A DNA stretch of 61,695 nt, filler included, from Basidiobolus meristosporus CBS 931.73 (Eukaryota; Fungi; Basidiobolomycota), in assembly GCA_002104905.1 (NCBI GenBank). It is 4 parts of 4 records of this genome, joined end to end, with 100 filler letters (N's around TTAATTAATTAA, not from the genome) between each part and the next. Parts side by side here need not be neighbours in the genome. Positions count along the whole stretch, not along the records: positions 13,019 to 31,771 come from MCFE01001049.1; 3 more parts are not named here. One strand, given 5' to 3'. Both the position numbers and the translations under genes were made by a program. The notes under the pieces are model-generated. The model saw nothing but the letters and a program-made list of their open reading frames with translations. It was not told the DNA's origin and searched no databases. Shown in pieces: positions 13,019 to 31,771 of the stretch (position 1 is the first letter of the stretch; every line of letters starts with the position of its first letter).

Positions 13019-13074
13019 ATATTGAGACTTCAGCCATACCTGTGAAGGAAGAGCTGGGAATAGCAGTAAGTGAG

Positions 13075-13700
13075 TATTTTCTGCTGAGAATGCTGAAAAG
13101 ATAATGGTTCTTGAAACCTTATGGACTTCTATACACCAGAGATATGATGGTTGAAATGTCAGTCAGTGATCAGAGTGTAAGTAATGATGTGATAGATACT
13201 CCAGCATGAGTGTATTTATCTACCATAGCCGTCATGATTATTAAACAAACGCGCAAAAGATACACTTCACAAAGCTCAGAGGGTAAAAAATCTTATCCTG
13301 GTCAAAATCCGTGTTTTGAGGCAGACGATTTTGAACCAGAATCCTCGTATGAAAGGCTTATCTACGCATCAACGGGGCATCAACGGGGCATCAACGGGGC
13401 ATCATCTTTCAGCACCACCATCAGTCATATGCCTAACGGTAAGACTATAGAGATTTCAACGAGTTATTTCACTCTACGATTATATGCATGCATTCAATCA
13501 AAGCAACTATGCCATTTGTTTACGTATCAAAATCCAAGCCACACACACTATAACAAGTCATACACACGATAAAGTTGTATATTATTCCCCTTCATTATCT
13601 TAGTAACTCTGTTTATGCCCTTATGGCTCTACACAATCTTCTTTAATATTCGATTCAACGGTGAAGTACTCACAATACGACTCAATACCGTTCCCTCCTC
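13075..13700. repeat. Diverged direct repeat X1 (homolog of 16310-17265)
   Basis: Collinear shared blocks, e.g. TGATGTGATAGAT, CAAAAGATAC...CACAAAGCTCAGA, CAGAATCCTCGTATG, CACTCTACGA...ATGCATGCATTCAATC, TATTCCCCTTCATT; contains (GCATCAACGGG)-type 12-bp unit x3 at ~13366-13402. Confidence 0.8.
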
Positions 13701-13995
13701 CTTAAACATGGTACTGCCAACCTGCGTATCAACCTTGGCTCATGGCAGCACGTGACTGCCGGGCCATTGGATACCGTAAGCGTAACTCCCGGACCACCCG
13801 GCACCTCCGCCAAAGCAATCCTGTACCTTTCTCTGCAAGATTGCAATAGGAAAAGGTTCAGGTTTGCTGCGATTACCTCGAAACTACGGAAAAGATGTGA
13901 CCGTTGGAGCAGTGAGAGTCTCTGCTAACTAGCATTCTCAATAAGAGTCATAATCACATGGCCATTCACTATCAATAGATAAAATGCAACGGTAC

Positions 13996-14001
13996 TTTAT
14001 T
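13996..14001 (-). terminator. Candidate polyadenylation signal AATAAA of peptide gene 1
   Basis: TTTATT on + strand ~57 nt downstream of the stop; gene 2 has the same signal at 14946-14951. Confidence 0.5.
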
Positions 14002-14057
14002 CAAGCACACAGACAAGCTATGTTGTTGGAGTGAATGAAAACCTTGATTGTTATTAT

Positions 14058-14507
14058 TTAGCAACCCCAGTCGCATCCACCATACCCTCCATATCCCCCG
14101 TAGCGTCCATATCCCCACCGACCTCCATAACCACCGTAGCGACCGTAACGTCCTCGTCCCCAGTATCTGCCCCTCCGCCGCCCATATCCACCGTATCTCC
14201 CCCATAGCTGGGCCTCTTCAGGATTGCCCTCCTCTTCCTCGACTCCTTGGTCGGCGCCTTGCTTGCTCGAGATAGTCTGATCAAACGTATTCCTCGACAT
14301 CTGGCCGAGAATGCCATCGATGTAGTGTCGAATATTCTGCGCATCCTCTTCCCTGTTGGACGAGAACTTCTTCACCATTTGACCGCTTTGCGGGTTCTTA
14401 TCGGAGATGGATGCGCTCGCTACATTTGTGCTTGACACATCTACGGGACTTCCAAAGGCACTAACGACCATTAGTAGAGCACAGGCTGCGGTAAGTTGTT
14501 TGTACAT
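14058..14507 (-). CDS. Secreted precursor 1 (149 aa) with C-terminal Gly/Tyr/Arg/Trp-rich domain ending GGCDWGC
   Basis: ATG at 14507 (track start is TTG), signal-like MYKQLTAACALLMVVSAFG, TATATAAA 40 nt upstream, AATAAA downstream, paralog with synonymous-biased divergence. Confidence 0.9.
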   Translation of the reverse strand: MYKQLTAACALLMVVSAFGSPVDVSSTNVASASISDKNPQSGQMVKKFSSNREEDAQNIRHYIDGILGQMSRNTFDQTISSKQGADQGVEEEEGNPEEAQLWGRYGGYGRRRGRYWGRGRYGRYGGYGGRWGYGRYGGYGGYGGCDWGC

Positions 14508-14546
14508 TGTGAATGTTGAATACTCCAATAAAGCTCAGCACCAGCC

Positions 14547-14554
14547 TTTATATA
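14547..14554 (-). promoter_or_regulatory. TATA box of peptide gene 1
   Basis: TATATAAA on - strand 40 nt upstream of ATG; equivalent spacing in gene 2. Confidence 0.7.
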
Positions 14555-14734
14555 CAGATACAAGATCGAGGTTGATTGATATCGCATCTAGGAAGCTTCG
14601 CGGAATCGATGGGTTTCGGACGAACGATATATTATATTTTGCATCTATTCTACAGGCATTAGGAAGATACAATAAGAGCTTCTAGAGTAGTGTTATCATG
14701 CGAAAAAAAATGACTACTAACAGTACACCATTAA

Positions 14735-14820
14735 AAGGTAAAAATTGACAGCATTGAAGGTAAAAATTGACCGCATTTAAAGGTAAAGATTGGCACCATT
14801 TATGAAGATAATTGACAGCC
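14735..14820. repeat. Three to four copies of a 22-23-bp unit (AAGGTAAAAATTGACAGCATT) upstream of gene 1
   Basis: Copies start at 14735, 14757 and 14780, plus a degenerate fourth. Confidence 0.7.
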
Positions 14821-14971
14821 AAACTGCAATAAGACTTATCTTTGCCTAGACATCCACCTTATCCATACACATATCCGACTTTCTCTCCATGCTGCAGCTT
14901 GGTAAACATCACTGATTAATTACGATGAGCATTGTCATTATGATGTTTATTAAACGTAAGGATGTAGTGCA

Positions 14972-15391
14972 TTAGCAACCCCAGTCGCATCCACCATAGC
15001 CACCATATCCCCCGTAGCGCCCATATCCCCATCGGCCTCCGTAGCCACCATAGCGACCGTAACGTCCTCGTCCCCAGTATCTGCTTCCCCATCTTCCATA
15101 GCCACCATATCTACCCCAAAGCTCGGCCTCTTCAGAGTCAGTGACTTCACTTGTAGGAGACGCTTGTTCATCTGCCAACCCACCGCCTGACATTTGGCCG
15201 AATATGTCGTCAAGAATGGCGCGAGCATCTTCGTCTTTTGTGGACTGGAATTGTGTTATCATTTTGCCGCTTTGTGGGTCCCGGATGGAGATGGAAGCAC
15301 TTGCTACATTGGTTGCTTCTGGCTGCACAGGGGTTGCCACCGCATATGAGGCAATTAGGAGAGCAAAGGTGACGGAGAAGTGCTTGTACAT
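14972..15391 (-). CDS. Secreted precursor 2 (139 aa), paralog of 14058-14507
   Basis: ATG at 15391 with the same context (TTCACAATGTACAA), signal-like MYKHFSVTFALLIASYAVA, TATA 37 nt upstream, 45/48 identical C-terminal domain. Confidence 0.9.
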   Translation of the reverse strand: MYKHFSVTFALLIASYAVATPVQPEATNVASASISIRDPQSGKMITQFQSTKDEDARAILDDIFGQMSGGGLADEQASPTSEVTDSEEAELWGRYGGYGRWGSRYWGRGRYGRYGGYGGRWGYGRYGGYGGYGGCDWGC

Positions 15392-15427
15392 TGTGAATCT
15401 GAATGAAGCACTTGAGCTGATTATGAG

Positions 15428-15435
15428 TATATATA
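15428..15435 (-). promoter_or_regulatory. TATA box of peptide gene 2
   Basis: TATATATA 37 nt upstream of ATG 15391. Confidence 0.65.
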
Positions 15436-16309
15436 CCCGCACAGCATTAAAGACACTCAACTTTACCTCTGCCTTCAGTGGGAAGCGCTGCGGGTGATCC
15501 ATTTGGCTGTTCAATAGAAGCTGTTTAGTGGCTCTTCATTCAATCAAACACGCAATACACAACAAAAAGCTTAAAAAGATCATTTGTTTAGCAGATATGT
15601 TACAGGTTAGCCACCTCCATATTAACCATATGCTAATATTGATTGTGTGAACTGAGTGTTTACGAGTCTGTACTTCCAGTTGCAGTCATCTCCATGTACC
15701 AATGTATCCTGTCACTGTAGCGTCATTATCCCTTTCTGTTGATGCCATAGATTCCTTTATATCTTCATATTTACTGAAGAATGGCATGATTGATGACATC
15801 TCTTGAGCCAACTCCAGCATTTATTCCCAGTCGGTTACACATACAGTTAACCTGCCGCAGTAAATCCTGAAGAATATACTTGGTCGGTGTATGGTAAGCG
15901 GAATTAGTAAGCTCCAAGTTAGGCTGCGATAATATAAAAATTAGTGTACTTATCGAATATATTCTCAGTGCATATAGCTTGTTGTAAGTTCATGCTAGCT
16001 GATATTGGAAGGGGCTGCGGTTCAAGCACTGAGAACTAGCTGCGATCATTATTACTAAATGACAACCATTGATTGCCTCAAGTATTCCATTTTCATTCTT
16101 AGTTGTACAGTATCTGTTGCAAATATCTTCAAATATTGGGATATTGTGGAGAATATAGGGTACTTGATAGTACAACACTGATTTAGAAGTGTCTAAAATG
16201 ATGAAAGCAGAGGCCTATTACACCTGGGCAGCCTGTAAGCAACTTTCAATCATCAATTACATAAAGAACTGCTCACCAAGGAGTCGATGTAAGTTCAAGT
16301 GCTGAGGCC

Positions 16310-17265
16310 ACTGCACTGCTGTGGAGAATACTGAAGAGGTAATAATATTTTGAGTATGACTACAATAAACCTTATGATCGTCTATGTAAGTATCAGTAGG
16401 TAATAACTTGGCAAGTGGAATGCTGCCAGCTTGATGTGATAGATGCTCCATCTTACCATCAGGCGCCAAAGTAAGTTTATTTATCTATCATAGCCATCAT
16501 AGTTATCGAACAAACGCTCAAAAGATACTCTCCACAAAGCTCAGATGGTCATAAGATCTTATCCGTGCTGTGGGGCAGACGAGAGGTTGAATCAGAATCC
16601 TCGTATGGAAGCCGGTGAGGGACAGCCGTGGTAGGGAGTGATGGAGGTTCAATAGGACGTAATCCCCGTCTCTCATCGCGTATCTCCCCGGTTTTGTCCC
16701 CACGTCTTTAGCAAAGTCTTCGAGAACCCCGACCTCGTGGAACCTTTCACTAAGCAATGATACTTACATTTCACTTGGGATAAATACCTAAGTAGGTAAA
16801 GCCTTTCACCTTATCCACGCATCAACCGGGCGTGTCTTTCACCACCACTATAAGTAATGGAAAGGCTATAAAGATTCGTGTTTTGAATAGATTTCCACAA
16901 GAGCCAGTGAGTTCTTTCACTCTACGAATGTATATGCATGCATTCAATCCGGTTTTACACTTACAGCGAATAGAAATTCAAGCCACGCACACTAAAACAA
17001 GCTACTCATACTATAAAATTGTAGCGCCCGTACTTCACTTGATTTAAGCCTTTTTATGTTACTAGTAGCAAGGAACGGGCTCGCTTGGCTAGAAACTGAA
17101 GTAAGGGTAATACACCCAGGAGTGATCAAATATTCCCCTTCATTGCCATGGTAACTCTGCCTATCTCTCCTTGCCTACCGTCCCTATCCCCTTAAAGCTC
17201 TATACAGTCCTCTTCAGTATTCAATTCAGTGGTGAAACACACACAATGCGATTCAATACCCTTCT
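16310..17265. repeat. Diverged direct repeat X2 (homolog of 13075-13700), ending where the satellite begins
   Basis: Same collinear blocks as X1 plus extra segments (~16610-16800, ~17030-17130). Confidence 0.8.
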
Positions 17266-17270
17266 CTGCA

Positions 17271-17440
17271 TGATATAGGACCTGGGTAATAATAATGAAA
17301 GTTGAGATCTAGGACCTGGGTAATAGTGATGAAAGTTGAGATCTAGGACCTGAGCTAAGGTGATAAAAGCTGAGATCTAGGACATGGGTAATAGTGATGA
17401 TAGTTGAGATCTAGGACCTGGGCTAAGGTGATGAAAGTTG
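17271..17440 (+). repeat. Left remnant (~5 monomers) of the 34-bp satellite array
   Basis: GATCTAGGACCTGGG...GATGAAAGTTGA units cut by the copia insertion at 17441. Confidence 0.92.
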
Positions 17441-17789
17441 TGTTGTAAAAATTTGTATTTCCACCTAAACATTCACCTAACTTAGTCACTTAGATCATTA
17501 CCTTCAAATCCTAGAAAATACTGACCAAATTCCTTGTTGGGCTTTACTTAGAATATTTTCACCAAAATACCAGGTACCCAGTACATGAAAATTCTCAAAG
17601 TTGTCCAAACAGCCCCAAACCTTGCACACATGTTCTTGTGACCTTCCTTAACCTATTCTACGTGTTTGTTATGCCAAGACCAGGTAAAAGTATAAATACT
17701 ACTTTTACAATCAATAAATCATCAAGTGAAAACCACATAATCTACTTGTCCTCCCAATCACTTCCAATATCCCCAAGACTCTTACAACA

Positions 17790-17802
17790 GGTTATGAGCC
17801 CT
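17790..17802 (+). promoter_or_regulatory. Primer binding site complementary to the tRNAiMet anticodon stem-loop (half-tRNA priming)
   Basis: GGTTATGAGCCCT directly after the LTR; variants at 4522, 34849, 43668, 56002; same PBS type as yeast Ty5 and Drosophila copia. Confidence 0.85.
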
Positions 17803-17820
17803 AAGCTGTCACTCTCTGCA

Positions 17821-19242
17821 ATGTCTACTACTGCTATTACTGGAATATTTCCCTCTGCTGAAAGGTTGGATGGCTCTAACTACCAAGTGTGGAAGGTGAA
17901 GATGAAGATGCTGCTACAAGGAAGAGGCCTTTGGGATATTGTCATGGGAGAAGAATCCCCTCCTAAAAACGTGGGAGAGGAAGCCTTAAAGTACCAGAAG
18001 AAAGAACAAAGTGCCTTTAACTGCATTTGCCTTAATGTCAAGGACAAATTGCTAATTCAATGCTCAAGAGCAAAAATGGCAAAGAATGCCTGGAAGGCAT
18101 TAGAAGACACCTACCAGTCATGTTCAGCTGCCAAGAAAATGTATCTGAGAAGAAAATTCTTTACTGCAAAGATGCTGCCAGGAGAAGAAATGAAAAATCT
18201 AATTAATAGAATTACCCTGCTGGTAGATGAGATGGAATCTGTGGGCGTACCAACTACTGAAGAGGATGTGATAGTTACCATCCTGAATAGCCTGACAGAC
18301 AAGTTCCAGGGCCTTGTATCAGCTCTAGAGTCCAGAACTGAAGATTTGACCTTAAATTACGTATATGGAAGGCTCCTGGATGAAGAATTAAGAAAATCAA
18401 GCGTCAATAAGAAGGAAGAAGAAAATGCTTTAATAAGCAATGATAACCAACAAAGGAGGTACCCAAGACCCTACAAAGGCAACAACAACCTATTTTGCAA
18501 CTACTGCAAAAGGAAAGGACACACATCAGACCGGTGTTTCAAAAAGAGAGATTATCAGCAAAAGAAGCCTGAATATGGAAATGCTGCAACAACTGAAGAT
18601 AGACTATTCATATCTGCACTAAATATGACCACAAACAAGGATTCTCAGACGTGGTATATTGACTCTGGAGCTTCTCAACACTTTACACACCAAAAAGAAC
18701 TTTTTACCCATTATCAAGAAATTCCAATTAAGAAGGTTTTCATGGGTGACGATAGAACACTTGATGCAGTGGGAGAAGGAACTATCCAAGTAAACCTTAG
18801 AAGCAGTGAAGGAAGCCATACACTGACCTTTAAAGAAGTACTCTATGTACCAGAAATAGCCAAGAACCTACTCTCTGTAAGCAAGGCCACAGCAGAAGGA
18901 CTCAGTTTCAGTTTTGACAATTCTGGATGCAGGATCACTGATCAAAATGGTGCTCATATTGCTTTGGGCATCAGAGATCAGAATCTATACAAGTTGACTT
19001 ATATTCCATCATATCTGGAAGCCAATATAAGTAACTTAAATGACAAAACACCAATGCTTTGGCACAGGAGATTTGGACACATCAATTTTGATTATTTGCG
19101 TAAAATGATCAAAGATCAGCTAATTTCTGGAGTGAAAATTGATCCCCCAGCTAATTTGGAGCACTGTGAAGCCTGCATATATGGGAAACAAGCTAGACAA
19201 CTGTTCAAGAGCTCTGGGTTAATCAAAACTAAGAAAAATTAG
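17821..19242 (+). CDS. Copia A3 ORF1: gag (CCHC knuckle), aspartic protease, GAG-pre-integrase HHCC domain
   Basis: CNYCKRKGHTSDRC, WYIDSGASQH, WHRRFGH...CEAC; start at 17821 or 17794; stops at the A5 frameshift. Confidence 0.88.
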   Translation: MSTTAITGIFPSAERLDGSNYQVWKVKMKMLLQGRGLWDIVMGEESPPKNVGEEALKYQKKEQSAFNCICLNVKDKLLIQCSRAKMAKNAWKALEDTYQSCSAAKKMYLRRKFFTAKMLPGEEMKNLINRITLLVDEMESVGVPTTEEDVIVTILNSLTDKFQGLVSALESRTEDLTLNYVYGRLLDEELRKSSVNKKEEENALISNDNQQRRYPRPYKGNNNLFCNYCKRKGHTSDRCFKKRDYQQKKPEYGNAATTEDRLFISALNMTTNKDSQTWYIDSGASQHFTHQKELFTHYQEIPIKKVFMGDDRTLDAVGEGTIQVNLRSSEGSHTLTFKEVLYVPEIAKNLLSVSKATAEGLSFSFDNSGCRITDQNGAHIALGIRDQNLYKLTYIPSYLEANISNLNDKTPMLWHRRFGHINFDYLRKMIKDQLISGVKIDPPANLEHCEACIYGKQARQLFKSSGLIKTKKN

Positions 19243-22200
19243 ATCTAATTCACTCAGATCTGTGCGGACCTATGCAAAATTTATCCTTAGGCGGGATGAA
19301 GTATTCAATCACTTTTATTGATGATTATACAAGATACACATGGGTCTACTTCATGGAGAGAAAGGAAGAAGCTCTGTCTAAGTTCAGGGAGTTTAAAGCC
19401 ACGGTGGAGAGAGAAACTGGTGAAAAAATCAAGAAAATATGCTCTGACAATGGTGGAGAATATACCTCAAAACTCTTCATCCACTTCTGCAAAATTCATG
19501 GGATAAAGCAAGAGACTACTGTACCATACTCCCCACAGCAAAATGGAGTAGCAGAACAAACTAACAGATCAATAATTGATATGGCAAGATCTATGATCCA
19601 TGATCAAAAATTATCCTATGATTTTTGGGCGGAATCAGTTGCCACTGCTGTATACCTTAAAAATAGGAGTTATAACAGAATACTTTGTGATTCTACTCCA
19701 TTTGAAGCATGGTATGGATTCAGACCAAGTGCAGAACATCTAAGAATATTTGGGTGTACAGCATATGCCAAAAAACTGGCCGGAAATCAGTCAAAATTTG
19801 AGCCAAAAAGTGTAAAATGCATATTTTTGGGCTACTGCAATGTGAGTAAGGCATACAGACTCTACAATACCAAAGCAAAGAAGCTGATCAAGTCCAGGGA
19901 TGTGTTGTTTGATGAAAATTCAAAATTTTCACAAAAAATGACATCAGATGATGACGAAAATTCTATCTCAAGTCCACCAATTGTCAGGATTGAATCAGAG
20001 CAAAACAATGAAAATTTTTTCACTCCAGAGGACTCTACAACTGTGGTTCAGCCAGAATCAGTGCCCAGCAATATCCCAGAAGTGATCATTCCAGTATCAA
20101 ATGCCCGGAGATCAAATTGGACAAGAAATAGCCCAAATTACTGTATTAATGAGGGTACAAACTTAGCCTATGCCTATTCAGTCCATATTGATGAGCCCCA
20201 GACTGTAAAAGAGGCCCTAAATAGCCCTCAGACAAAGTTTTGGAGATCTGCAATGACTGAGGAATATCAGGCCCTGATGGAAAATCAAACTTGGGACTTA
20301 GTCAAATTACCAATCAACCAAAAATCAATTGGATGCAGATGGGTCTTTAAGACAAAATACAAGGCTGATGGTACAATTGAAAGATACAAAGCAAGACTTG
20401 TAGCTAAAGGATACTCTCAAACAAAAGGACTTGACTATACTGAGACCTTTGCACCGGTGGCCAAGTTTAATTCCATCAGATTAATATTAGACTTGTTCTG
20501 TTGGATAGTGCCACATTGAGCCATGAGTGCCAAATGAGACCATAGCATGCCAGTGAGGCCAACTGAGCCAACACTTGGCCATAGAGTGTGAAACATAGAT
20601 CTGCATCTTTATGCAAAGCAGCCTCTGTGTTTCACTCATTGTGATGAGAAAATCCATTTTTTGACCTTTTTTTTAGGTCAATGTTGCGCAAGATGAGCAA
20701 GAGCACTGAAGGATTGAAGATATGCATCTGGTCCTCAATACCCATGGCACTCTGAATCTAGCTCCTGTAGCTTGTATCATGTCACAAAAATGCATGGTAC
20801 TATCTTGGTCCACTGGTACTATCTGGCACTATATTTAAATATTAACCCTAAAGTAAGATCTATACAAAGCACTTATAGTGCCAGATAGTACCAGTGGACC
20901 AAGATAGTGCCATGCTTTTTTGTGACATGATACAAGCTACAGGAGCTAGATTCAGAGTGCCATGGGTATTGAGTACCAGATGCATATCTTCAGTTCTCCT
21001 GTGCTCTTGCAGATCCTGCACAATATTGATCCACAAAAAAACATCAAAAAATGGATTTTCTCCTGCATCATAGGTGAAACACAGGGGATGCTTTGCATGA
21101 AGATGCAGATCTATGTTTCACACTCTGTGGCCAAGTATAGGCTCACTTGGCCTCTCTGGCACACTACGGCATCATTTGGCACTCATGGCTCAATGTGGCA
21201 CTATCCAATGGAACAAGTCTAGTGGCTATTGCAGCCAAATATAAGTTTTTTATTCATCAAATGGATGTAAAAACTGCATTTTTGAATGGAGAACTTGATG
21301 AGGACGTGTATATGGACCAGCCTGATGGGTTTGTTGACCAAGATAACCCCCATTTGGTCTGCAAGCTTAAAAAGTTGCTATATGGTCTCAAACAATCACT
21401 GAGAGCCTGGAATTGCAAGATAGATTCTTATTTGGAATCTTTGAGTTTCAAAAGAAGTAATGCTGACTATAGTATATACTATAAGCCAGATAGAGCAAAT
21501 CCAGTTCTATTAGCTCTATATGTGGATGATCTTATTATAGCCACCAATAACCTAGAAACATTGGAAGAGACTAAATCCAGCCTATCTAAGGAGTTCAAGA
21601 TGTCCAATCTAGGAGAACTTAGTTACTACTTAGGGATTAAGTTCTCCATAGACAGAAGTACCCAGACTATTACCCTAAGCCAATCCCAGTATATTCAAGA
21701 TATACTAAAGAAGTACAAAATGGAAGACTGTAAATCGGCAGCTACCCCAATGGAGACAAACCTTAACTTGGTCAAAACTCAACCAAATCAAGAGAGCTTG
21801 GTGCCATCTGAAAGCCCTGACTTTCCTTATCAATCTATAGTCAGCAGTCTGATGTATATCATGATTGGAACATGTCCAGATATCTCATATTCAGTGGGAG
21901 TTGTCAGCCAACATAATCGGAAATATGGATCTGATCATATTGCAGCAGTTAAGCGGATTTTTAGATACATAAAAGGAACTGCTGATATTTGCGTAAGATA
22001 CACTTATAAGACCTCAGAACAAGATCTTGTGGGATACTCTGATGCAGATTGGGGACAAAATTTGGAAGACAGAAGATCCACCACAGGATACACCTTTCTT
22101 TACTGTAAAGGAGCAATTTCACGGAATTCAAGAAAGCAACCAACCATAGCACTTTCTACTACAGAGGCAGAGTATATGGCAGCCTGTGAAGCTACAAAAG

Positions 22201-22499
22201 AAGCAATGTGGTTAAGAAAGCTCTTTGCAGATTTAGGCCTATGTCAAAAAACGCCTATTACTTTATTTCAAGATAATCAAGGATGTATACAATCAGGTAG
22301 AAATCCAACTTTTCATGCTAGAACCAAGCACACATATATTAGACATCATTTCATACATGAAGCTATAAAGAATAACTTAGTTAGCTTAGTTTACTGTACT
22401 ACAGATGAAATGAATGCAGACATATTTACCAAACCATTAGCTAGAGACAAGTTTAAATATCTTACGTCAAAATTAGGACTAGTCAGTATGAACATTTAG
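19239..22499 (+). pseudogene. Copia A3 integrase core, RT and RNase H, interrupted by the foldback element
   Basis: [44 protein letters not shown]; frame is restored when 20489-21223 is removed. Confidence 0.92.
20489..21220. mobile_element. 732-bp foldback/MITE-like element: ~345-bp inverted arms around a 40-bp loop
   Basis: Arms 20489-20833 and 20874-21220 are reverse complements (AGACTTGTT...AACAAGTCT); probable 3-bp TSD ATT/AGT; no coding capacity. Confidence 0.93.
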
Positions 22500-22859
22500 C
22501 TGAGTGGGAGTGTTGTAAAAATTTGTATTTCCACCTAAATATTCACCTAACTTAGTCACTTAGATCATTACCTTCAAATCCTAGAAAATACTGACCAAAT
22601 TCCTTGTTGGGATTTACTTAGAATATTTTTACCAAAATACCAGGTACCCAGAACATGAAAATTCTCAAAGTTGTCCAAACAGCCCCAAACTTTGCACACA
22701 TGTTCTTTGGACCTTCCTTAACCTATTCTACGTGTTTTTGATGCCAAGACCAGGTAAAAGTATAAATACTACCTTTACAATCAATAAATCATTAAGTGAA
22801 AACCACATAATCTACTTGTCCTCCCAATCACTTCCAATATCTCCAAGACTCTTACAACA

Positions 22860-25800
22860 AGTTGGGATCTATAACCTAGGTAATGGTGAAGAAAGTTGAG
22901 ATCTAGAACCTGGGTAATAGAGATGATATTTGAGATCTAGGATCTGGGCTAAGGTGATGAAAGTAGAGACCTAGGACATGGGTAATGGTTGTGAAAGTTG
23001 AGATCTAGGGCCTGGGTAAGAGTGATGAAAATTGAGATCTAGGCCCTGAATAATAGTGATAAAGTTTGAGATCTATTACCAGGGTAAGTGTGATGAAAAT
23101 TGAGATCTAGGACCTGGACCAAGGTAATCAAAGTTGAGATCTAGGACCTGGGCCCTGGTGATGAATGTTGAAGTTTAGGTCCTGGGCCAAGGTGATGGAA
23201 GTTGAGATCTAGGACCTGGGTCATGGTGATGAAATTTGTGATCTAGGACCTGGGCTAATGTGACAAATGTTGAATTTTAGGTCCTGGGCTAAGGTAATCA
23301 AAGTTGAGATCTAGGACCTGGGTCATGGTGTTGAAAGCTGATATTGAGGACCTGGGCTAAGGTGATGGAAAATGAGATCTAGGACATGGGCCAAGGTGAT
23401 GGAAAATGAGATCTAGGACCTGGGCCAAGGTGATGAAATTAGTGATCTAGGACCTGGGCTAACGTGATGAATGTTGAATTTTAGGTCCTGCGCTAAGGTA
23501 ACCAAAGTTGAGATCTAGGACCTGGGTCATGGTGATGAAATTTGTGATCTAGGACCTGAGCTAATGTGATGAATGTTGAATTTTAGGTCCTGGGCTAAGG
23601 TGATCAAAGTTGAGATCTAGGACCTGGGTCATGGTGATGAAAGTTGAAATCTAGGACCTGGGTCATGGTGATGAATGTTGAAGTTTAGGTCCTGGGCTAA
23701 GGTGAAAATGAGATCTAGGACCTGGACCAAGGTAATGAAAGTTGAAATCTAGGACCTGGGTCATGGTGATGAATGTTGAAGTTTAGGTCCTGGTCTAGGT
23801 GATGAAAGTTGAGATTGAGGACCTGGACCAAGGTACTCAAAGTTGAGATCTAGGACCTGGGTCATGGTGATGAATGTTGTGATCTAGGACCTGGGCTAAG
23901 GTGATGAATGTTGAAGTTTAAGTCCTGGGCCAAGGTGATGAAAGTTGAGATCTAGGATCCGGGTCATGGTGATGAATGTTGAGATCCAGGACCTGGGCCA
24001 AGGTGATGAATGTAGAAGTTTAAGTCCTGGGCTAAGGTGATGAAAGTTTAGATTGAGAACCTGGGCTAAGGTGATGGAAAATGAGATCTAGGACCTGGGC
24101 TCAGGGGATGGAAAATGAGATCTAGGACCTGGGTCATGGTGATGAATGTTGAGATTTAGGACCTGGGCCAAGGTGATGAATGTTGAATTTTAGGTCCTGG
24201 GCCAAGGTGATGAAAGTTGAGATCTAGGACCTGGGTCATGGTGATGAAAGTTGAGATTGAGGACCTGGGCCAAGGTGATGGAAGTTGAGATCTAGGACCT
24301 GGGCTAAGGTATTGGAAAATGAGATCTAGGACCTGGGGCATGGTGATGAATGTTGAGATCTAGGACCTGGGCCAAGGTGATGAATGTTGAAATTTAGGTC
24401 CTGGGCCAAGGTGATGAAAGATGAGATCTAGGACCTGGGCTAAGGTATTGGAGAATGATATCTAGGACCTGGGCCAAGGTGATGAATGTTGAAATTTAGG
24501 TCCTGGGCCAAGGTGATGAAAGATGAGATCTAGGACCTGGGCTAAGGTATTGGAGAATGATATCTAGGACCTGGGCTAAGGTGATGAATGTTGAATTTTA
24601 GGTCCTGGGCTAAGGTGATCAAAGTTGAGATCTAGGACCTGGGTCATGGTGATGAAAGTTGAAATCTAGGACCTGGGTCATGGTGATGAATGTTGAAGTT
24701 TAGGTCCTGGGCTAAGGTGAAAATGAGATCTAGGACCTGGACCAAGGTAATGAAAGTTGAAATCTAGGACCTGGGTCATGGTGATGAATGTTGAAGTTTA
24801 GGTCCTGGTCTAGGTGATGAAAGTTGAGATTGAGGACCTGGACCAAGGTACTCAAAGTTGAGATCTAGGACCTGGGTCATGGTGATGAATGTTGTGATCT
24901 AGGACCTGGGCTAAGGTGATGAATGTTGAAGTTTAAGTCCTGGGCCAAGGTGATGAAAGTTGAGATCTAGGATCCAGGTCATGGTGATGAATGTTGAGAT
25001 CCAGGACCTAGGCCAAGGTGATGAATGTAGAAGTTTAAGTCCTGGGCTAAGGTGATGAAAGTTTAGATTGAGAACCTGGGCTAAGGTGATGGAAAATGAG
25101 ATCTAGGACCTGGGCTCAGGGGATGGAAAATGAGGTCTAGGACCTGGGTCATGGTGATGAATGTTGAGATTTAGGACCTGGGCCAAGGTGATGAATGTTG
25201 AATTTTAGGTCCTGGGCCAAGGTGATGAAAGTTGAGATCTAGGACCTGGGTCATGGTGATGAAAGTTGAGATTGAGGACCTGGGCCAAGGTGATGGAAGT
25301 TGAGATCTAGGACCTGGGCTAAGGTATTGGAAAATGAGATCTAGGACCTGGGGCATGGTGATGAATGTTGAGATCTAGGACCTGGGCCAAGGTGATGAAT
25401 GTTGAAATTTAGGTCCTGGGCCAAGGTGATGAAAGATAAGATCTAGGACCTGGGCTAAGGTATTGGAGAATGATATCTAGGACCTGGGCTAAGGTGATGG
25501 AAAATGAGATCCAGGACCTGGGTCAAGGTGATGAAAGTTGAGATCTAGGACCTGGACCAAGGTAATCAAAGTTGAGATCTAGGACCTGGGTCCTGGTGAT
25601 GAATGTTGAAGTTTAGGTCCTGGGCTAAGGTGATGAAAGTTGAGATTGAGGGCCTGGGCTAAGGTGATGGAAAATGAGATCTAGGATCTGGGCCAAGGTG
25701 ATTAAAGTTGAGATTAAAGACCTGGGACAAGGTGATGGAAGTAGAGATCTAGGACCTGCACTACAGTGATGGAAGTTAAGATTGAGGACCTGGGCCAAGG

Positions 25801-28800
25801 TGATGGAAGTTGAGATCTAGGACCTGGGCAAAGGTGATGGAAAATGAGATCTAGGACCTGGGCCAAGGTGATAAAATTTGTGATCTAGGACCTGGGCTAA
25901 GGTGATGAATGTTGAATTTTAGATCCTGGGCTAAGGTAATCAAAGTTGAGATCTAGGACCTGGGTCATGGTGTTGAAAGCTGATATTGAGGACCTGGGCT
26001 AAGGTGATGGAAAATGAGATCTAGGACATGGGCCAAGGTGATGGAAAATGAGATCTAGGACCTGGGCCAAGGTGATGAAATTAGTGATCTAGGACCTGGG
26101 CTAACGTGATGAATGTTGAATTTTAGGTCCTGCGCTAAGGTAACCAAAGTTGAGATCTAGGACCTGGGTCATGGTGATGAAATTTGTGATCTAGGACCTG
26201 AGCTAATGTGATGAATGTTGAATTTTAGGTCCTGGGCTAAGGTGATCAAAGTTGAGATCTAGGACCTGGGTCATGGTGATGAAAGTTGAAATCTAGGACC
26301 TGGGTCATGGTGATGAATGTTGAAGTTTAGGTCCTGGGCTAAGGTGAAAATGAGATCTAGGACCTGGACCAAGGTAATGAAAGTTGAAATCTAGGACCTG
26401 GGTCATGGTGATGAATGTTGAAGTTTAGGTCCTGGGCTAAGGTGAAAATGAGATCTAGGACCTGGACCAAGGTAATGAAAGTTGAAATCTAGGACCTGGG
26501 TCATGGTGATGAATGTTGAAGTTTAGGTCCTGGTCTAGGTGATGAAAGTTGAGATTGAGGACCTGGACCAAGGTACTCAAAGTTGAGATCTAGGACCTGG
26601 GTCATGGTGATGAATGTTGTGATCTAGGACCTGGGCTAAGGTGATGAATGTTGAAGTTTAAGTCCTGGGCCAAGGTGATGAAAGTTGAGATCTAGGATCC
26701 AGGTCATGGTGATGAATGTTGAGATCCAGGACCTGGGCCAAGGTGATGAATGTAGAAGTTTAAGTCCTGGGCTAAGGTGATGAAAGTTTAGATTGAGAAC
26801 CTGGGCTAAGGTGATGGAAAATGAGATCTAGGACCTGGGCGCAGGGGATGGAAAATGAGATCTAGGACCTGGGTCATGGTGATGAATGTGGAAATTTAGG
26901 ACCTGGGCCAAGGTGATGAATGTTGAAGTTTAGGTCCTGGGCCAAGGTGATGAAAGTTAAGATCTAGGACCTGGGCTAAGGTATTGGAAAATGAGATCTA
27001 GGACCTGGGGCATGGTGATGAATGTTGAGATCTAGGACCTGGGCCAAGGTGATGAATGTTGAAATTTAGGTCCTGGGCCAAGGTGATGAAAGTTGAGATC
27101 TAGGACCTGGGTCATGGTGATGAAAGTTGAGATTGAGGACCTGGGCTAAGGTGATGGAAAATGAGATCCAGGACCTGGGTCAAGGTGATGAAAGTTGAGA
27201 TCTAGGACCTGGACCAAGGTAATCAAAGTTGAGATCTAGGACCTGGGTCCTGGTGATGAATGTTGAAGTTTAGGTCCTGGGCTAAGGTGATGAAAGTTGA
27301 GATTGAGGGCCTGGGCTAACGTGATGGAAAATGAGATCTAGGATCTGGGCCAAGGTGATTAAAGTTGAGATTGAGGACCTGGGACAAGGTGATGGAAGTT
27401 GAGATCTAGGACCTGGACTACAGTGATGGAAGTTAAGATTGAGGACCTGGGCCAAGGTGATGGAAAGTGTGATCTAGGACCTGGGCCAAGGTGATGAAAT
27501 TAGTGATCTATGACCTGGGCTAACGTGATGAATGTTGAATTTTAGGTCCTGGGCTAAGGTAATCAAAGTTGAGATCTAGGACCTGGGTCATGGTGACAAA
27601 ATATGTGATCTAGTACCTGGGCTAAGGTGATGAATGTTGAAGTTTAGGTCCTGGGCTAAGGTGATGGAAAATGAGATCTAGGACCTGGGCCATGGTGATG
27701 AAAGTTGATATTGAGGACCTGGGCCAAGGTGATGGAAGTTGAGATCTAGGACCTCGGCTCAGGGGATGGAAAATGAGATCTAGGACCTAGGTCATGGTGA
27801 TGAGTGTCGAGATCTAGGACCTGGGCCAAGGTGATGAATGTTGAAGTTAAGGTCCTGGGCCAAGGTGATGAAAGTTGAGATCTAGGACCCAGGTCATGGT
27901 GATGAAAGTTGACATTGAGGACCTGAGCCAAGGTGATGGAAGTTGAGATCTAAGACATGGGCTAAGGTGATGGAAAATGAGATCTAGGACCTGGGTCATG
28001 GTGATGAATGTTGAGATCTAGGACCTGGGCCAAGGTGATGAAAGTTGAGATCTAGAACCTGGGTCATGGTGATAAAAGTTGAGATTGAGGACCTGGGCCA
28101 AGGTGATGGAAGTTGAGATCTAGGACCTGGGCTAAGGTCATGGAAAATGAGATCTAGGACCTGGGTCATGGTGATGAATGTTGAGATCCAGGACCTTGGC
28201 CAAGGTGATCAATGTTGAAGTTTAGGTCCTGGGCTAAGGTGATGAAAGTTCAGATTGATAACCTGGGCTGAGGTGATGGAAAATGAGATCTAGGACCTGG
28301 GCCAAGGTGATGAAAGTTGAGATCTAGGACCCAGGTTGTGGTGATGAAAGTTGAGATTGAGGACCTGGGCCAAGGTGATGGAAGTTGAGATCTAGGACCC
28401 AGGTCATGGTGATGAAAGTTGAGATTGAGGACCTGTGCCAATGTGATGAATGTTGAGATCCAGGACCTGAGCTAAGGTGATCAATGTTGAAGTTAAGGTC
28501 CTGGGCCAAGGTGATGAATGTTGAAGTTTATGTCCTGGGCTAAGGTGATGAAAGTTTAGATTGAGAACCTGGTCTAAGGTGATGGAAAATGAGATCTAGG
28601 ATCTGGGCCAAGGTGATGAAAGTTGAGATTGAGAACCTGGGCCAAGGTGATGGAAGTTGAGATCTAGGACCTGGACTACGGTGATGGAAGTTAAGATTGA
28701 GGACCTGGGCCAAGGTGATAGAAGTTGAGATCTAGGACCCGGGCCAAGGTGATGGAAAATGAGATCTAGGACCTGGGCCAAGGTGATGAAATTTGCGATC

Positions 28801-30470
28801 TAGGACCTGGGCTAAGGTGATGAATGTTGAATTTTAGGTCCTGGGCTAAGGTAATCAAAGTTGAGATCTAGGACCTGGGTCATGGTGATGAAATTTGTGA
28901 TCTAGGACCTGAGCTAATGTGATGAATGTTGAATTTTAGGTCCTGGGCTAAGGTAATCAAAGTTGAGATCTAGGACCTGGGTCATGGTGATGAAAGTTGA
29001 TATTGAGGATTTGGGCTAAGGTGATGGAAATTGAGATCTAGGACCTGGGCCAAGGTGATGGAAAATGAGATCTAGGACCTGGGCCAAGGTGATGAAATTA
29101 GTGATCTAGGACCTGGGCTAACGTGATGAATGTTAAATTTTAGGTCCTGGGCTAAGGTAATCAAAGTTGAGATCTGGGACCTGGGTCATGGTGATGAAAG
29201 TTGATATTGAGGACCTGGGCCAAGGTGATGGAAGTTGAGATCTAGGACCTGGGCCCAGGGGATGGAAAATGAGATCTAGGACCTAGGTCATGGTGATGAA
29301 TGTTGAGATCTAGGACCTGGTCCAAGGTGATGAATGTTGAAGTTTAGGTCCTGGGCCAAGGTGATGAAAGTTGAGATCTAGGACCCAGGTCATGGTGATG
29401 AAAGTTGACAATGAGGACCTGAGCCAAGGTGATGGAAGTTGAGAACTAGGACCTGGGCTAAGGTGATGGAAAATGAGATCTAGGACCTGGGTCATGGTGA
29501 TGAATGTTGAGATCTAGGACCCGGTTCATGGTGATGAAAGTTGAGATTAAGGACCTGCGCTAAGGTGATGGAAAATGAGATCCAGGACCTGGGCCAAGGT
29601 GATCAAAGTTGAGATCCAGGACCTGGGTCATGGTGATGAAAGTTGACATTGAGGACCTGGGCCAAGGTGATGGAAGTTGAGATCCAGGACCTGCGCTAAG
29701 GTGATGGAAAATGAGATCCAGGACCTAGGCCATGGTGATCACAGTTGAGATCCAGGACCTGGGTCATGGTGATGAAAGTTGAGATTAAGGACCTGGGCCA
29801 AGGTGATGGAAGTTGAGATCTAGGACTTGGGCTAAGGTCATGGAAAATGAGATCTAGGACCTGGGTCATGATGATGAATGTTGAGATCTAGGACCTGGGC
29901 CAAGGTGATGAATGTTGAAGTTAAGGTGCTGGGCTAAGGTGATGAAAGTTTAGATTGAAAACCAGGGCTAAGGTGATGGAAAATAAGATCTAGGACCTGG
30001 GCCAAGGTGATGAATGTTAACATTTAGGATCTGGGCTAAGGTGATCAATGTTGAGTTCTAGGACCAGGGTATTGGTGATGGAAGTTAAGAACTAGAATCT
30101 TAGTATTGGTGATGAAAGCTGAGATTTAGGACCTGGGAGATGATGATGAAAGTTGAGATCTAGAACCAGGTTAAGGTGATCAAAGTTGAGATCTAGGAAC
30201 TGGGTCATGTGATAAAAGCTGGGATCAACAATTTGGTTGAAGGTACTGAATATTGAAAAAAAGGAAAAAGTAAAGTGATTGTCAAGATTCAATACCTACG
30301 TCAAGACAATGATAGGTGGCACTAGGACCTTGGTTAAGGTTATTAAAGCACATATCTAGGACCTGGGTAAAGATTAAAATAGCAAACATCCGGGTCTTGG
30401 TTTAAGGTGACAAAAGCTGAATATCATGACCAATGTCAAAGTGACATCAGTTGAGATATAGTATTTTGAT
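22860..30470 (+). repeat. 34-bp satellite array (~215 monomers) with higher-order repeats
   Basis: Consensus GATCTAGGACCTGGGCTAAGGTGATGAAAGTTGA; diagnostic variant blocks recur at +1015 and +2642 bp; both edges degenerate. Confidence 0.98.
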
Positions 30471-31771
30471 TAGATGATGAAAAGGAATTGCGGTTTCTTC
30501 TGGTAACACATGTTACTGATCTGACAGATAATACTGATATACTGTTAGGCTAATATTTATTGCTAAATATCTTGACTAATGCTAGATCTAATTTAATAAA
30601 ATAGGTGGTAGATTGTACCAAATGTAGCTGCAATTTTTAACAAGACTGACCAAGTGCTGTTAGTTACTCCAAGTAGCAAGTCTGTTGAATAGGGCCTGAA
30701 TTTGCTTTTATGAAGTAAGCTGATAAATAATAAATCATTATGGACCAAATAGGTTTATCATTGGAAATTGCCTCAAATGCAAGCTTTGATCCACCAACAC
30801 TCTATCACTAGCTGTTTACGTTTTGGCTTTAGTCCATGTGACTCATGAAAACACTCAGAAATATGGTTACTTTCAGATGAAAGCAAATTATTGTGTTTAA
30901 ATGGTCAAAATTCTATTACTGCCACAATGAGTGTTTATGTGGATTCTTGATATTGTAAGTGTACAAGACAATTAGTTAAAAATTCAGGAGGTATCATAGC
31001 AACCAAAGAGAGAGCAGGTTTACACATAGATATGTATGTCATTTATGTTGCACATATTATCCTCATTAGATGCTCATAATGAATTGGAAAGATGCTTCAA
31101 CAATTGGATAGCCACCCAAAGATGTGTTCACCATCCAGAAGAAAGATTCATAACTAATCCATCCTGGCTTGCAAGAAACTTCCTACATTTGCCATGGAAG
31201 TCAAAGAGGTATCTGGATATGCAAGAATGCACAAGCAAATGTGAATATAGATCAAGCTATTGCTCATAAGAATGGCAGCCAAGTATATGCACCTCTGCAG
31301 AAGAAATATAGCGTAAAACTATGCCAAGTGCCCCACCATTTATACAAGAGTGTATAGTGGAATTTTATGCTAGTAATTTTAAAGCGCACACTTGATTTCT
31401 AAAACAGAAATAATCATATGATCCTAAATGATTGAAAGGGCAAAGTAAACCAAATGTAGGCCCTACACATACCAATCCTGTGTAAAACTGCTATAAAAAT
31501 TAAACTTTTGAATGACAAAACAATCCAGTGTTTCAATATTGAGAGTATTGATGATATCTATGTAGCAAGTTCCACAAAATCAAAAGTGTACAATTGTTTG
31601 GTGCAGTGCAACTAGCAATATGAAGGGTTTTTTTTGCCATAGATGCCTGCTACTGACATCTGGACTGGACAATCTGATATGTTTATTTGTTAAGTAAATA
31701 TGCCAAAGTAATGCCAGTCACTTATGATTACAATAATAGCTGTTCTGATACACTCATCAGATGAGAGTTAA

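Follow-up and report, generated by a model that had tools for sequence, protein, structure and literature searches.

The window analysed here is a stretch of 61,695 nucleotides, filler letters included, joined from four parts of the genome assembly GCA_002104905.1 of Basidiobolus meristosporus CBS 931.73, a member of a genus to which core gut fungi of amphibians and reptiles belong, and occasional human pathogens as well. Its positions 13019-31771 come from record MCFE01001049.1 and contain two tandem genes, called A and B here, whose predicted products are secretory precursors ending in a tail rich in Gly, Tyr, Arg and Trp. Both genes, with all of their features, are on the minus strand, and both are intact and without introns; gene A occupies 14058-14507 and encodes 149 amino acids plus a stop codon, and gene B occupies 14972-15391 and encodes 139 amino acids plus a stop codon. 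The two proteins are exact entries of this strain, A being identical to P0001 and B to P0028, and they represent types A and B of the family described below. A preliminary description of the locus, made from the sequence alone, had listed two intronless genes with a TATA box, a common start context and a polyadenylation signal, and all of these elements are present. The TATA boxes are 37-47 nt 5' of the ATG, with that of gene A (TATATAAA) at 14547-14554, 40-47 nt from the start, and that of gene B (TATATATA) at 15428-15435. The start context ATTCACAATGTACAA is common to the two genes, and AATAAA signals are found at 13996-14001, about 60 nt past the stop codon of gene A, and at 14946-14951, about 21 nt past that of gene B. 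The TATA box, start context and AATAAA are kept in 20 other family copies.

The order of domains is the same in both proteins, and consists of a signal peptide, a conserved TNVASASIS...PQSG block, a weak helix (residues 52-80), an acidic spacer, a six-residue junction motif and the tail. The signal peptides were called by inspection, and each is predicted to span residues 1-19, ending ...SAFG before SP in A (14451-14507) and ...YAVA before TP in B (15335-15391); their features are canonical, with Lys3, a hydrophobic core of 12-13 residues (KD(9) 2.5-2.9, and 2.87 for gene A) and small residues at -3 and -1. The junction motif is PEEAQL in A (14205-14222), directly 5' of the tail and kept superfamily-wide, and SEEAEL in B (15119-15136). 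The tails (14061-14204 in A and 14975-15118 in B) are of 48 codons each and contain 21 Gly, 10 Tyr, 10 (A) or 8 (B) Arg, 4 (A) or 5 (B) Trp, and two Cys within a terminal CDWGC, corresponding to 44% G, 21% Y and 17-21% R, with three YGGYG motifs; a recount left the residue numbers given previously unchanged. Net charge passes from -7 in the pro-region to +9 in the tail of A, and from -10 to +7 in B, such that a signal peptide is followed in each protein by an anionic propiece and a cationic C-terminal peptide of roughly balanced charge. The only dibasic sites are KK at residue 46 and RRR at 110-112 of A, and B has none. An AlphaFold2 model based on a 25-sequence alignment has a mean predicted local distance difference test score (pLDDT) of 47, with helix only at residues 4-15, within the gene A signal peptide, and weakly at 52-80, which predicts an essentially disordered protein.

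Purifying selection on the tail is strong. Its 48 codons differ between A and B by 13 synonymous changes and three adjacent non-synonymous ones (RRG versus WGS), and the Nei-Gojobori method gives a synonymous divergence (dS) of 0.65, a non-synonymous divergence (dN) of 0.028, and a ratio of the two (omega) of 0.043, far from the value near 1 that would speak against selection. Recounting thus reproduced the 13 and three changes reported earlier, and the greater divergence noted for the pro-region is equally clear, with dN at 0.45 and dS saturated; omega for the signal peptide is 0.64. The same pattern is seen when 20 intact copies from eight loci are pooled (pN/pS being close to 0.09 for the tail, against 0.26-0.65 for the pro-region), and when the tail is compared with that of a divergent array copy (locus L011; omega 0.11-0.13 at dS 0.46-0.60), and the tail is nearly invariant among 25 paralogues. 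Because omega is low in the tail across the A/B, pooled and L011 comparisons, the Gly/Tyr/Arg frame is the selected one, and because the synonymous differences are many, the conservation of the tail is not merely the product of gene conversion. With intact reading frames and a low tail omega, the genes are real and under selection, as the preliminary description had supposed.

The same description placed the pair as isolated among transposable elements, which holds for this contig only; elsewhere in the genome, the repeat unit to which the pair belongs recurs in multi-copy tandem arrays on at least eight other contigs. The B-to-A repeat unit of approximately 3.0-3.3 kb, containing both genes and about 1 kb of downstream sequence, extends over 13019-16050 (minus strand; upper edge approximate), and the pair with the 1 kb beyond it shares 93-96% identity over about 3.2 kb with units in loci L002, L003, L004 and L006. 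In the seven loci of the assembly that were retrieved, such arrays repeat every 2.8-3 kb or so, and each has several A copies and fragments along with a B-to-A pair. On the present contig, 16296-17269 (minus strand) is left over from a spacer that elsewhere comes after the A copies of arrays, to which it is 91-99% identical, and a 34-bp satellite, itself host to a Copia element, truncates the array at 17269. Clustering at 90% identity gives 28 annotated members of type A and 11 of type B, and no fewer than 12 other models are truncated or have the tail read in the wrong frame; the family numbers about fifty copies. Among full-length copies, 20 of 21 are intact; frameshifts, truncation or a nonsense codon affect many copies, and the frameshifts may owe something to indel errors in the assembly, although a true nonsense codon is present in one copy at least. 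Because five of the seven arrays are at a contig end and have no telomere-like repeats there, the assembly probably breaks inside the arrays, and a subtelomeric location was rejected, telomere-type repeats being absent from the contig ends. The possibility of a precursor of a RiPP (a peptide made on the ribosome and modified after translation) was also set aside, with no tailoring-enzyme genes within or adjoining the arrays.

The main new result is that A and B, as judged from sequence comparison, belong to a superfamily of proteins with a conserved leader and junction and variable cationic tails. Two further loci of B. meristosporus (L009 and L010) contain tandem arrays whose proteins, of 184-218 amino acids, carry a signal peptide (LLMATLAYG) that is homologous to the A/B one, along with an N.A.ASVS block, a long acidic spacer and a (D/N)PEEAEL-W(G/R)R junction. 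Three types are distinguished by their tails, with (RWGRG)n and a GRRW end in type C, WGRFGG followed by RWGRG repeats in type D, and an Arg/Phe-rich repeat in type E. Profile-profile alignment of A/B with C/D/E gives a probability of 99.5% (E 3.6e-22) over 133 columns, from the start of the proteins to the tail. In proteins of B. ranarum, as in all of these, a signal peptide and an acidic spacer occur together with the block N.A.AS(V/I)S and the junction PEE.(E/Q)L, and the B. ranarum tails include an RY/D repeat, an RGG/RFG repeat with a Cys-containing cap at its end, and one Cys-rich domain. A cationic and aromatic character is common to all the repeat tails of the sisters, namely (RWGRG)n, RF-rich, RY/D-rich and RGG/RFG. 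An earlier, second junction, PEE(A/G/S)Q(L/M)-RR, is present in types C and E and in the B. ranarum proteins P0052, P0053, P0055 and P0057, and because a strongly cationic Lys/His/Arg block follows it, the PEEAQL-type junction marks the start of cationic modules. The first such module of A/B has decayed, leaving a near-neutral helix.

Two observations on the relatives may be added. First, B. ranarum P0041 (L008, 3185-3532) has the N-terminal block and acidic region and no cationic tail in any downstream frame, so that either the tail has been lost or the N-terminal domain has a role of its own. Secondly, residues 31-110 of a type C protein (L009, 10488-11078) give a sub-threshold match to PF01663 (Phosphodiest; 19.7 bits, cut-off 23), and the match is also present, as a faint one, in the fused public gene models; this may be a chance match or a trace of the origin of the leader.

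Outside the superfamily, no match to a characterised family was found. Pfam and NCBIfam scans of A and B gave no match above threshold, with none in NCBIfam at E values up to 10, and a PDB sequence search with the tail gave none at E up to 10, in keeping with the earlier statement that this is not a recognised named family. PF07172 (plant glycine-rich protein) scores 8.7 bits against a gathering cut-off of 30, and the top feature match in the ESM Atlas (0.83, to an oomycete "glycine-rich protein" cluster) is below a meaningful level; for PF07172, as for the name 'rSAM-associated Gly-rich repeat protein' that UniRef assigns automatically to two paralogues, the likeness consists in richness in glycine and the presence of a signal peptide. 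Word searches and an exhaustive profile search over 1.84 billion representatives recovered no true relatives outside B. meristosporus and B. ranarum; the other profile matches, to a "suex-1-like" protein of Anastrepha, a helicase of Candida and unnamed proteins from metagenomes, were set aside as compositional, and a word search with the tail alone gave matches confined to the source genome. A scan of bacterial and archaeal genomes gave 48 pattern matches and no confirmed relative, and a JGI metagenome scan likewise gave pattern matches with no confirmed relative. These results argue against a horizontal origin and against the rSAM-associated label, which was rejected, being neither reproduced by NCBIfam nor accompanied by bacterial relatives. 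No mention of the A and B loci was found in a literature search, and on these comparisons the family appears to be undescribed and Basidiobolus-specific. Contigs from two other sequencing runs, bearing different organism labels, contain pieces that are 90-99% similar, which suggests that the family is present in other isolates.

The interpretation that we favour, with a confidence that falls just short of even, is that the A/B family encodes propeptide-masked precursors of antimicrobial-type (host-defence) peptides. The signal peptide would send the pre-pro-protein into the secretory pathway, where the N-terminal block and acidic spacer would neutralise a C-terminal cationic, aromatic and glycine-rich peptide of 45-48 residues, until proteolysis at the invariant PEEA(Q/E)L-WGR junction freed it. 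The cut, which the preliminary description placed before WGR, may instead fall after it, giving a peptide with a YGGYG start, because the sisters carry RR where A/B has GR (ELWRR, ELYRR, ELRR). The terminal Cys-x3-Cys would close a small loop and shield the C-terminus from exopeptidases, and the freed peptide would work outside the cell in host defence or competition, with bacteria and fungi in herptile guts, dung and litter as plausible targets; Basidiobolus belongs to the core of herptile gut communities and has close links to bacteria (PMC12400927, PMC7466969). That the proteins are precursors of a secreted bioactive peptide is suggested by the conservation of the leader and junction, the interchangeability of the cationic aromatic cargo, and the charge-matching of the acidic spacers. 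The idea of a precursor put forward in the preliminary description gains support from the sister sub-families in particular, which keep the leader and junction and swap the cationic tail. Among secreted bioactive peptides, host-defence peptides are the best fit, and the antimicrobial-type assignment draws on the Arg/Trp and YGGYG repeats, both of which are known antimicrobial motifs (PMC6017362; PMC2453101; PMC11112505). The reading is further backed by the purifying selection on the tail and its near invariance among paralogues, by the conserved gene signals, and by a layout of constant leader and hypervariable cationic cargo like that of known defence-peptide precursors.

Several points weigh against this interpretation. 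The WGR junction of A and B has no canonical dibasic site, and B is dibasic-free throughout. In the A/B proteins it is the leader that has diverged more and the tail that is better conserved, whereas many antimicrobial peptide families diversify. The presence of about fifty near-identical copies suggests production in bulk, as would also be apt for a structural material, and Gly/Tyr/Arg polymers are classic coacervate and cross-linking sequences. The charge-matching across the superfamily (tails of +4 to +18 preceded immediately by K/R-free acidic stretches of -6 to -22; r = -0.54) is drawn from 14 non-independent sequences, with p about 0.05. Finally, the stretch was found in no run on record as RNA, the matching runs giving contigs only.

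Parallels are to be found in several unrelated systems. One is offered by the NLP-29 cluster and CNC (caenacin) peptides of Caenorhabditis elegans, which are likewise small secreted YGGYG-type Gly/Tyr/Arg/Trp repeat proteins encoded in tandem gene clusters, and of which NLP-31 is antifungal in vitro (PMC2453101, PMC11112505). However, the nematode precursors have no long acidic pro-region, PEEA.L junction or terminal Cys-x3-Cys, their nlp cluster is under positive selection whereas the A/B tail is under purifying selection, and A/B copies are about ten times as numerous as the NLP/CNC genes; in the profile search over 1.84 billion representatives, NLP and CNC proteins of nematodes were absent from the matches. 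In layout the superfamily matches the preprodermaseptin-type precursors of frogs, an unrelated lineage, in which a conserved signal peptide and acidic propiece lead through a processing site to a variable cationic C-terminal peptide, and the frog 'Rana box' peptides also have a small disulfide loop at the end. The frog precursors are cut at a Lys-Arg site and carry mostly amphipathic helices, in contrast to the PEEA.L-W(G/R)R junction and disordered, Gly- and aromatic-rich cargo of the A/B family. By analogy, then, the A/B family would work like both the nematode NLP/CNC and the frog-type prepro-peptides while being homologous to neither. The Arg/Trp-rich antimicrobial peptides (PMC6017362) provide a compositional parallel, with the (RWGRG)n and RF-rich sister tails matching their combination of Arg with aromatic residues; the A/B tail has 4-5 Trp and 8-10 Arg, but Gly and Tyr dominate. 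Among fungal proteins, the KEX2-processed repeat proteins (KEPs) are secreted precursors thought to free small peptides (PMC6339444, PMC7329392). B. meristosporus CBS 931.73 was reported to be the KEP-richest of 1461 strains surveyed, with 43 (PMC7329392), and these include a Basidiobolus-only type rich in Tyr and Asp (PMC6339444, PMC7329392). The RR at the junctions of types C and E and of the B. ranarum proteins is a KEP-like feature, as is the predicted N-terminal signal peptide of A/B, but the defining feature of KEPs, repeated cores with flanking dibasic sites, is absent from A/B, which has a single tail.

The strongest competing explanation, a serious one that we nonetheless consider rather unlikely, is that the product is a structural or adhesive material, in which the Gly/Tyr/Arg tail, processed or not, coacervates through cation-pi interactions and charge pairing with the acidic block, after which cross-links of the dityrosine or disulfide kind fix it in the wall of spores or zygospores or in the sticky capilliconidial tip. 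The composition of the tail and the complete disorder predicted by AlphaFold2 would suit such a material, as would the near balance of acidic and basic blocks within one chain and the two invariant terminal Cys residues, which could make intermolecular bonds; the purifying selection on about fifty near-identical copies suggests that dosage is in demand, and Basidiobolus makes several types of spore (PMC7466969). What speaks for peptide precursors instead is the behaviour of the sister proteins, which keep the leader and junction and have the tail replaced by Arg/Trp or Arg/Phe repeats, a Lys/His block or a Cys-rich domain, since such swapping of cargo is typical of bioactive peptides and not of a single material. 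The proteins also have no wall-anchoring signal, be it a glycosylphosphatidylinositol signal, PIR repeats or a Ser/Thr-rich stalk.

A role in signalling directed at the host or prey seems very improbable. It supposes that a fungal convertase or the trypsin of the gut cuts after Arg and frees short peptides with a YGGYG start, as mimics of animal neuropeptides or opioid-like ligands; cuts after each Arg would yield YGGYGR, YGGYGGR and a C-capped YGGYGGYGG...C peptide, the RR at the aligned junction position of the sisters makes a cut after WGR plausible, and the fungus inhabits animal guts. The precedent is the YGGYG motif of the nematode NLP-24/27 peptides; those of C. elegans NLP-24 are reported to activate NPR-17 and the human kappa and mu opioid receptors in cell culture (PMC11112505). 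However, the argument is one of motif resemblance, the sister tails (RWGRG, RFG) have no YGGYG motif, and word and profile searches found no homology to nematode genes. The more specific proposal by analogy, that a gut fungus makes opioid-like YGGYG ligands in bulk from its approximately fifty copies and so alters gut motility or behaviour in its host or prey, strikes us as more speculative still. The remaining alternative, in which non-functional reading frames ride in an amplified repeat of about 3 kb and a stop-free Gly-rich repeat mimics a gene, has in its favour the many frameshifted, truncated or nonsense-bearing copies, a tail that is open in three frames with wrong-frame models in public annotation, and the position of the arrays among transposable elements and satellites, but is largely refuted by the pattern of selection (omega of 0.04-0.13 in the Gly/Tyr/Arg frame at dS 0.46-0.65), the integrity of nearly all full-length copies with their promoter, start context and poly(A) signal, and the persistence of the architecture in divergent sub-families and a second species, and we give it hardly any credence.

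Should propeptide-masked defence peptides prove to be the correct reading, the signal peptide, acidic spacer and PEEA.L junction would constitute an unrecognised, Basidiobolus-specific secretory cassette that delivers varied cationic peptides, among them one Gly/Tyr/Arg peptide whose gene has been multiplied to about fifty copies. Among early-diverging fungi, Basidiobolus would be the first with a gene-encoded system of glycine-rich defence peptides, and the convergence with the YGGYG peptides of nematodes would be a striking one. It would also give a testable handle on the interaction of Basidiobolus with gut bacteria, hitherto discussed in terms of secondary metabolites alone, and the conserved tail is short enough for direct synthesis and assay.

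Several minor features of the genes and arrays deserve mention. The spacer from B to A contains a 23-bp tandem repeat (about 3.4 copies, also scored with a 45-bp period) at 14725-14816, 220-300 nt upstream of the gene A start, which may be a cis-regulatory repeat, and an exact 11-bp tandem repeat (GCATCAACGGG, 3.5 copies) is found at 13366-13404, in the common region downstream of gene A. The tail region of gene A is open in all three minus-strand frames (14054-14344 and 13972-14205), and several of the paralogue gene models P0002 and P0006-P0013 read the tail in two wrong frames, after frameshifts or via forced introns, with products rich in Asp/Thr/Gly/Val or in Leu/Arg/Trp; these models are likely to be pseudogenes or artefacts of annotation or assembly. 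One sequencing run (X1) gives, over 13950-15520, a summed contig word depth of about 1e5 on gene A compared with 2.5-4.9e3 on the B-to-A spacer, a ratio of about 30 where about 5-6 is expected from the assembly. This ratio is ambiguous, and could reflect either arrays that are strongly collapsed in the assembly or an RNA run with very high expression of gene A.

Other loci add to the picture of the arrays. A recombinant copy at L003 3148-3567 has the N-terminal half of type B with an RRRG tail variant and 3' flank of type A, and indicates exchange between the two types within the common tail. The more divergent array of L011 (6984-9665), close to the end of a 167-kb contig, has a B-like copy with a short tail of 18 residues and an A-like copy ending ...GNHGGCDWGC, and may be an older locus of the family. 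A fragment of large-subunit ribosomal RNA (Rfam RF02543, 197 bits) is located at L002 20090-20450, about 10 kb beyond the array, with no small-subunit or 5.8S matches across the L002 locus as retrieved.

The sequences that bound the array in the window are repetitive. The 34-bp satellite occupies 22859-30226, with about 217 copies (77% matches) and a GC skew that is extreme, at about +0.45, and five more copies are present at 17272-17440, across the Copia element from the main block. This element, a Copia-type long terminal repeat (LTR) retrotransposon at 17440-22863, was inserted into the satellite; its LTRs (17440-17793 and 22510-22863) are 96.3% identical, and its gag, integrase and reverse transcriptase frames are split over open reading frames at 17638-19242, 19272-20519 and 21147-22499.

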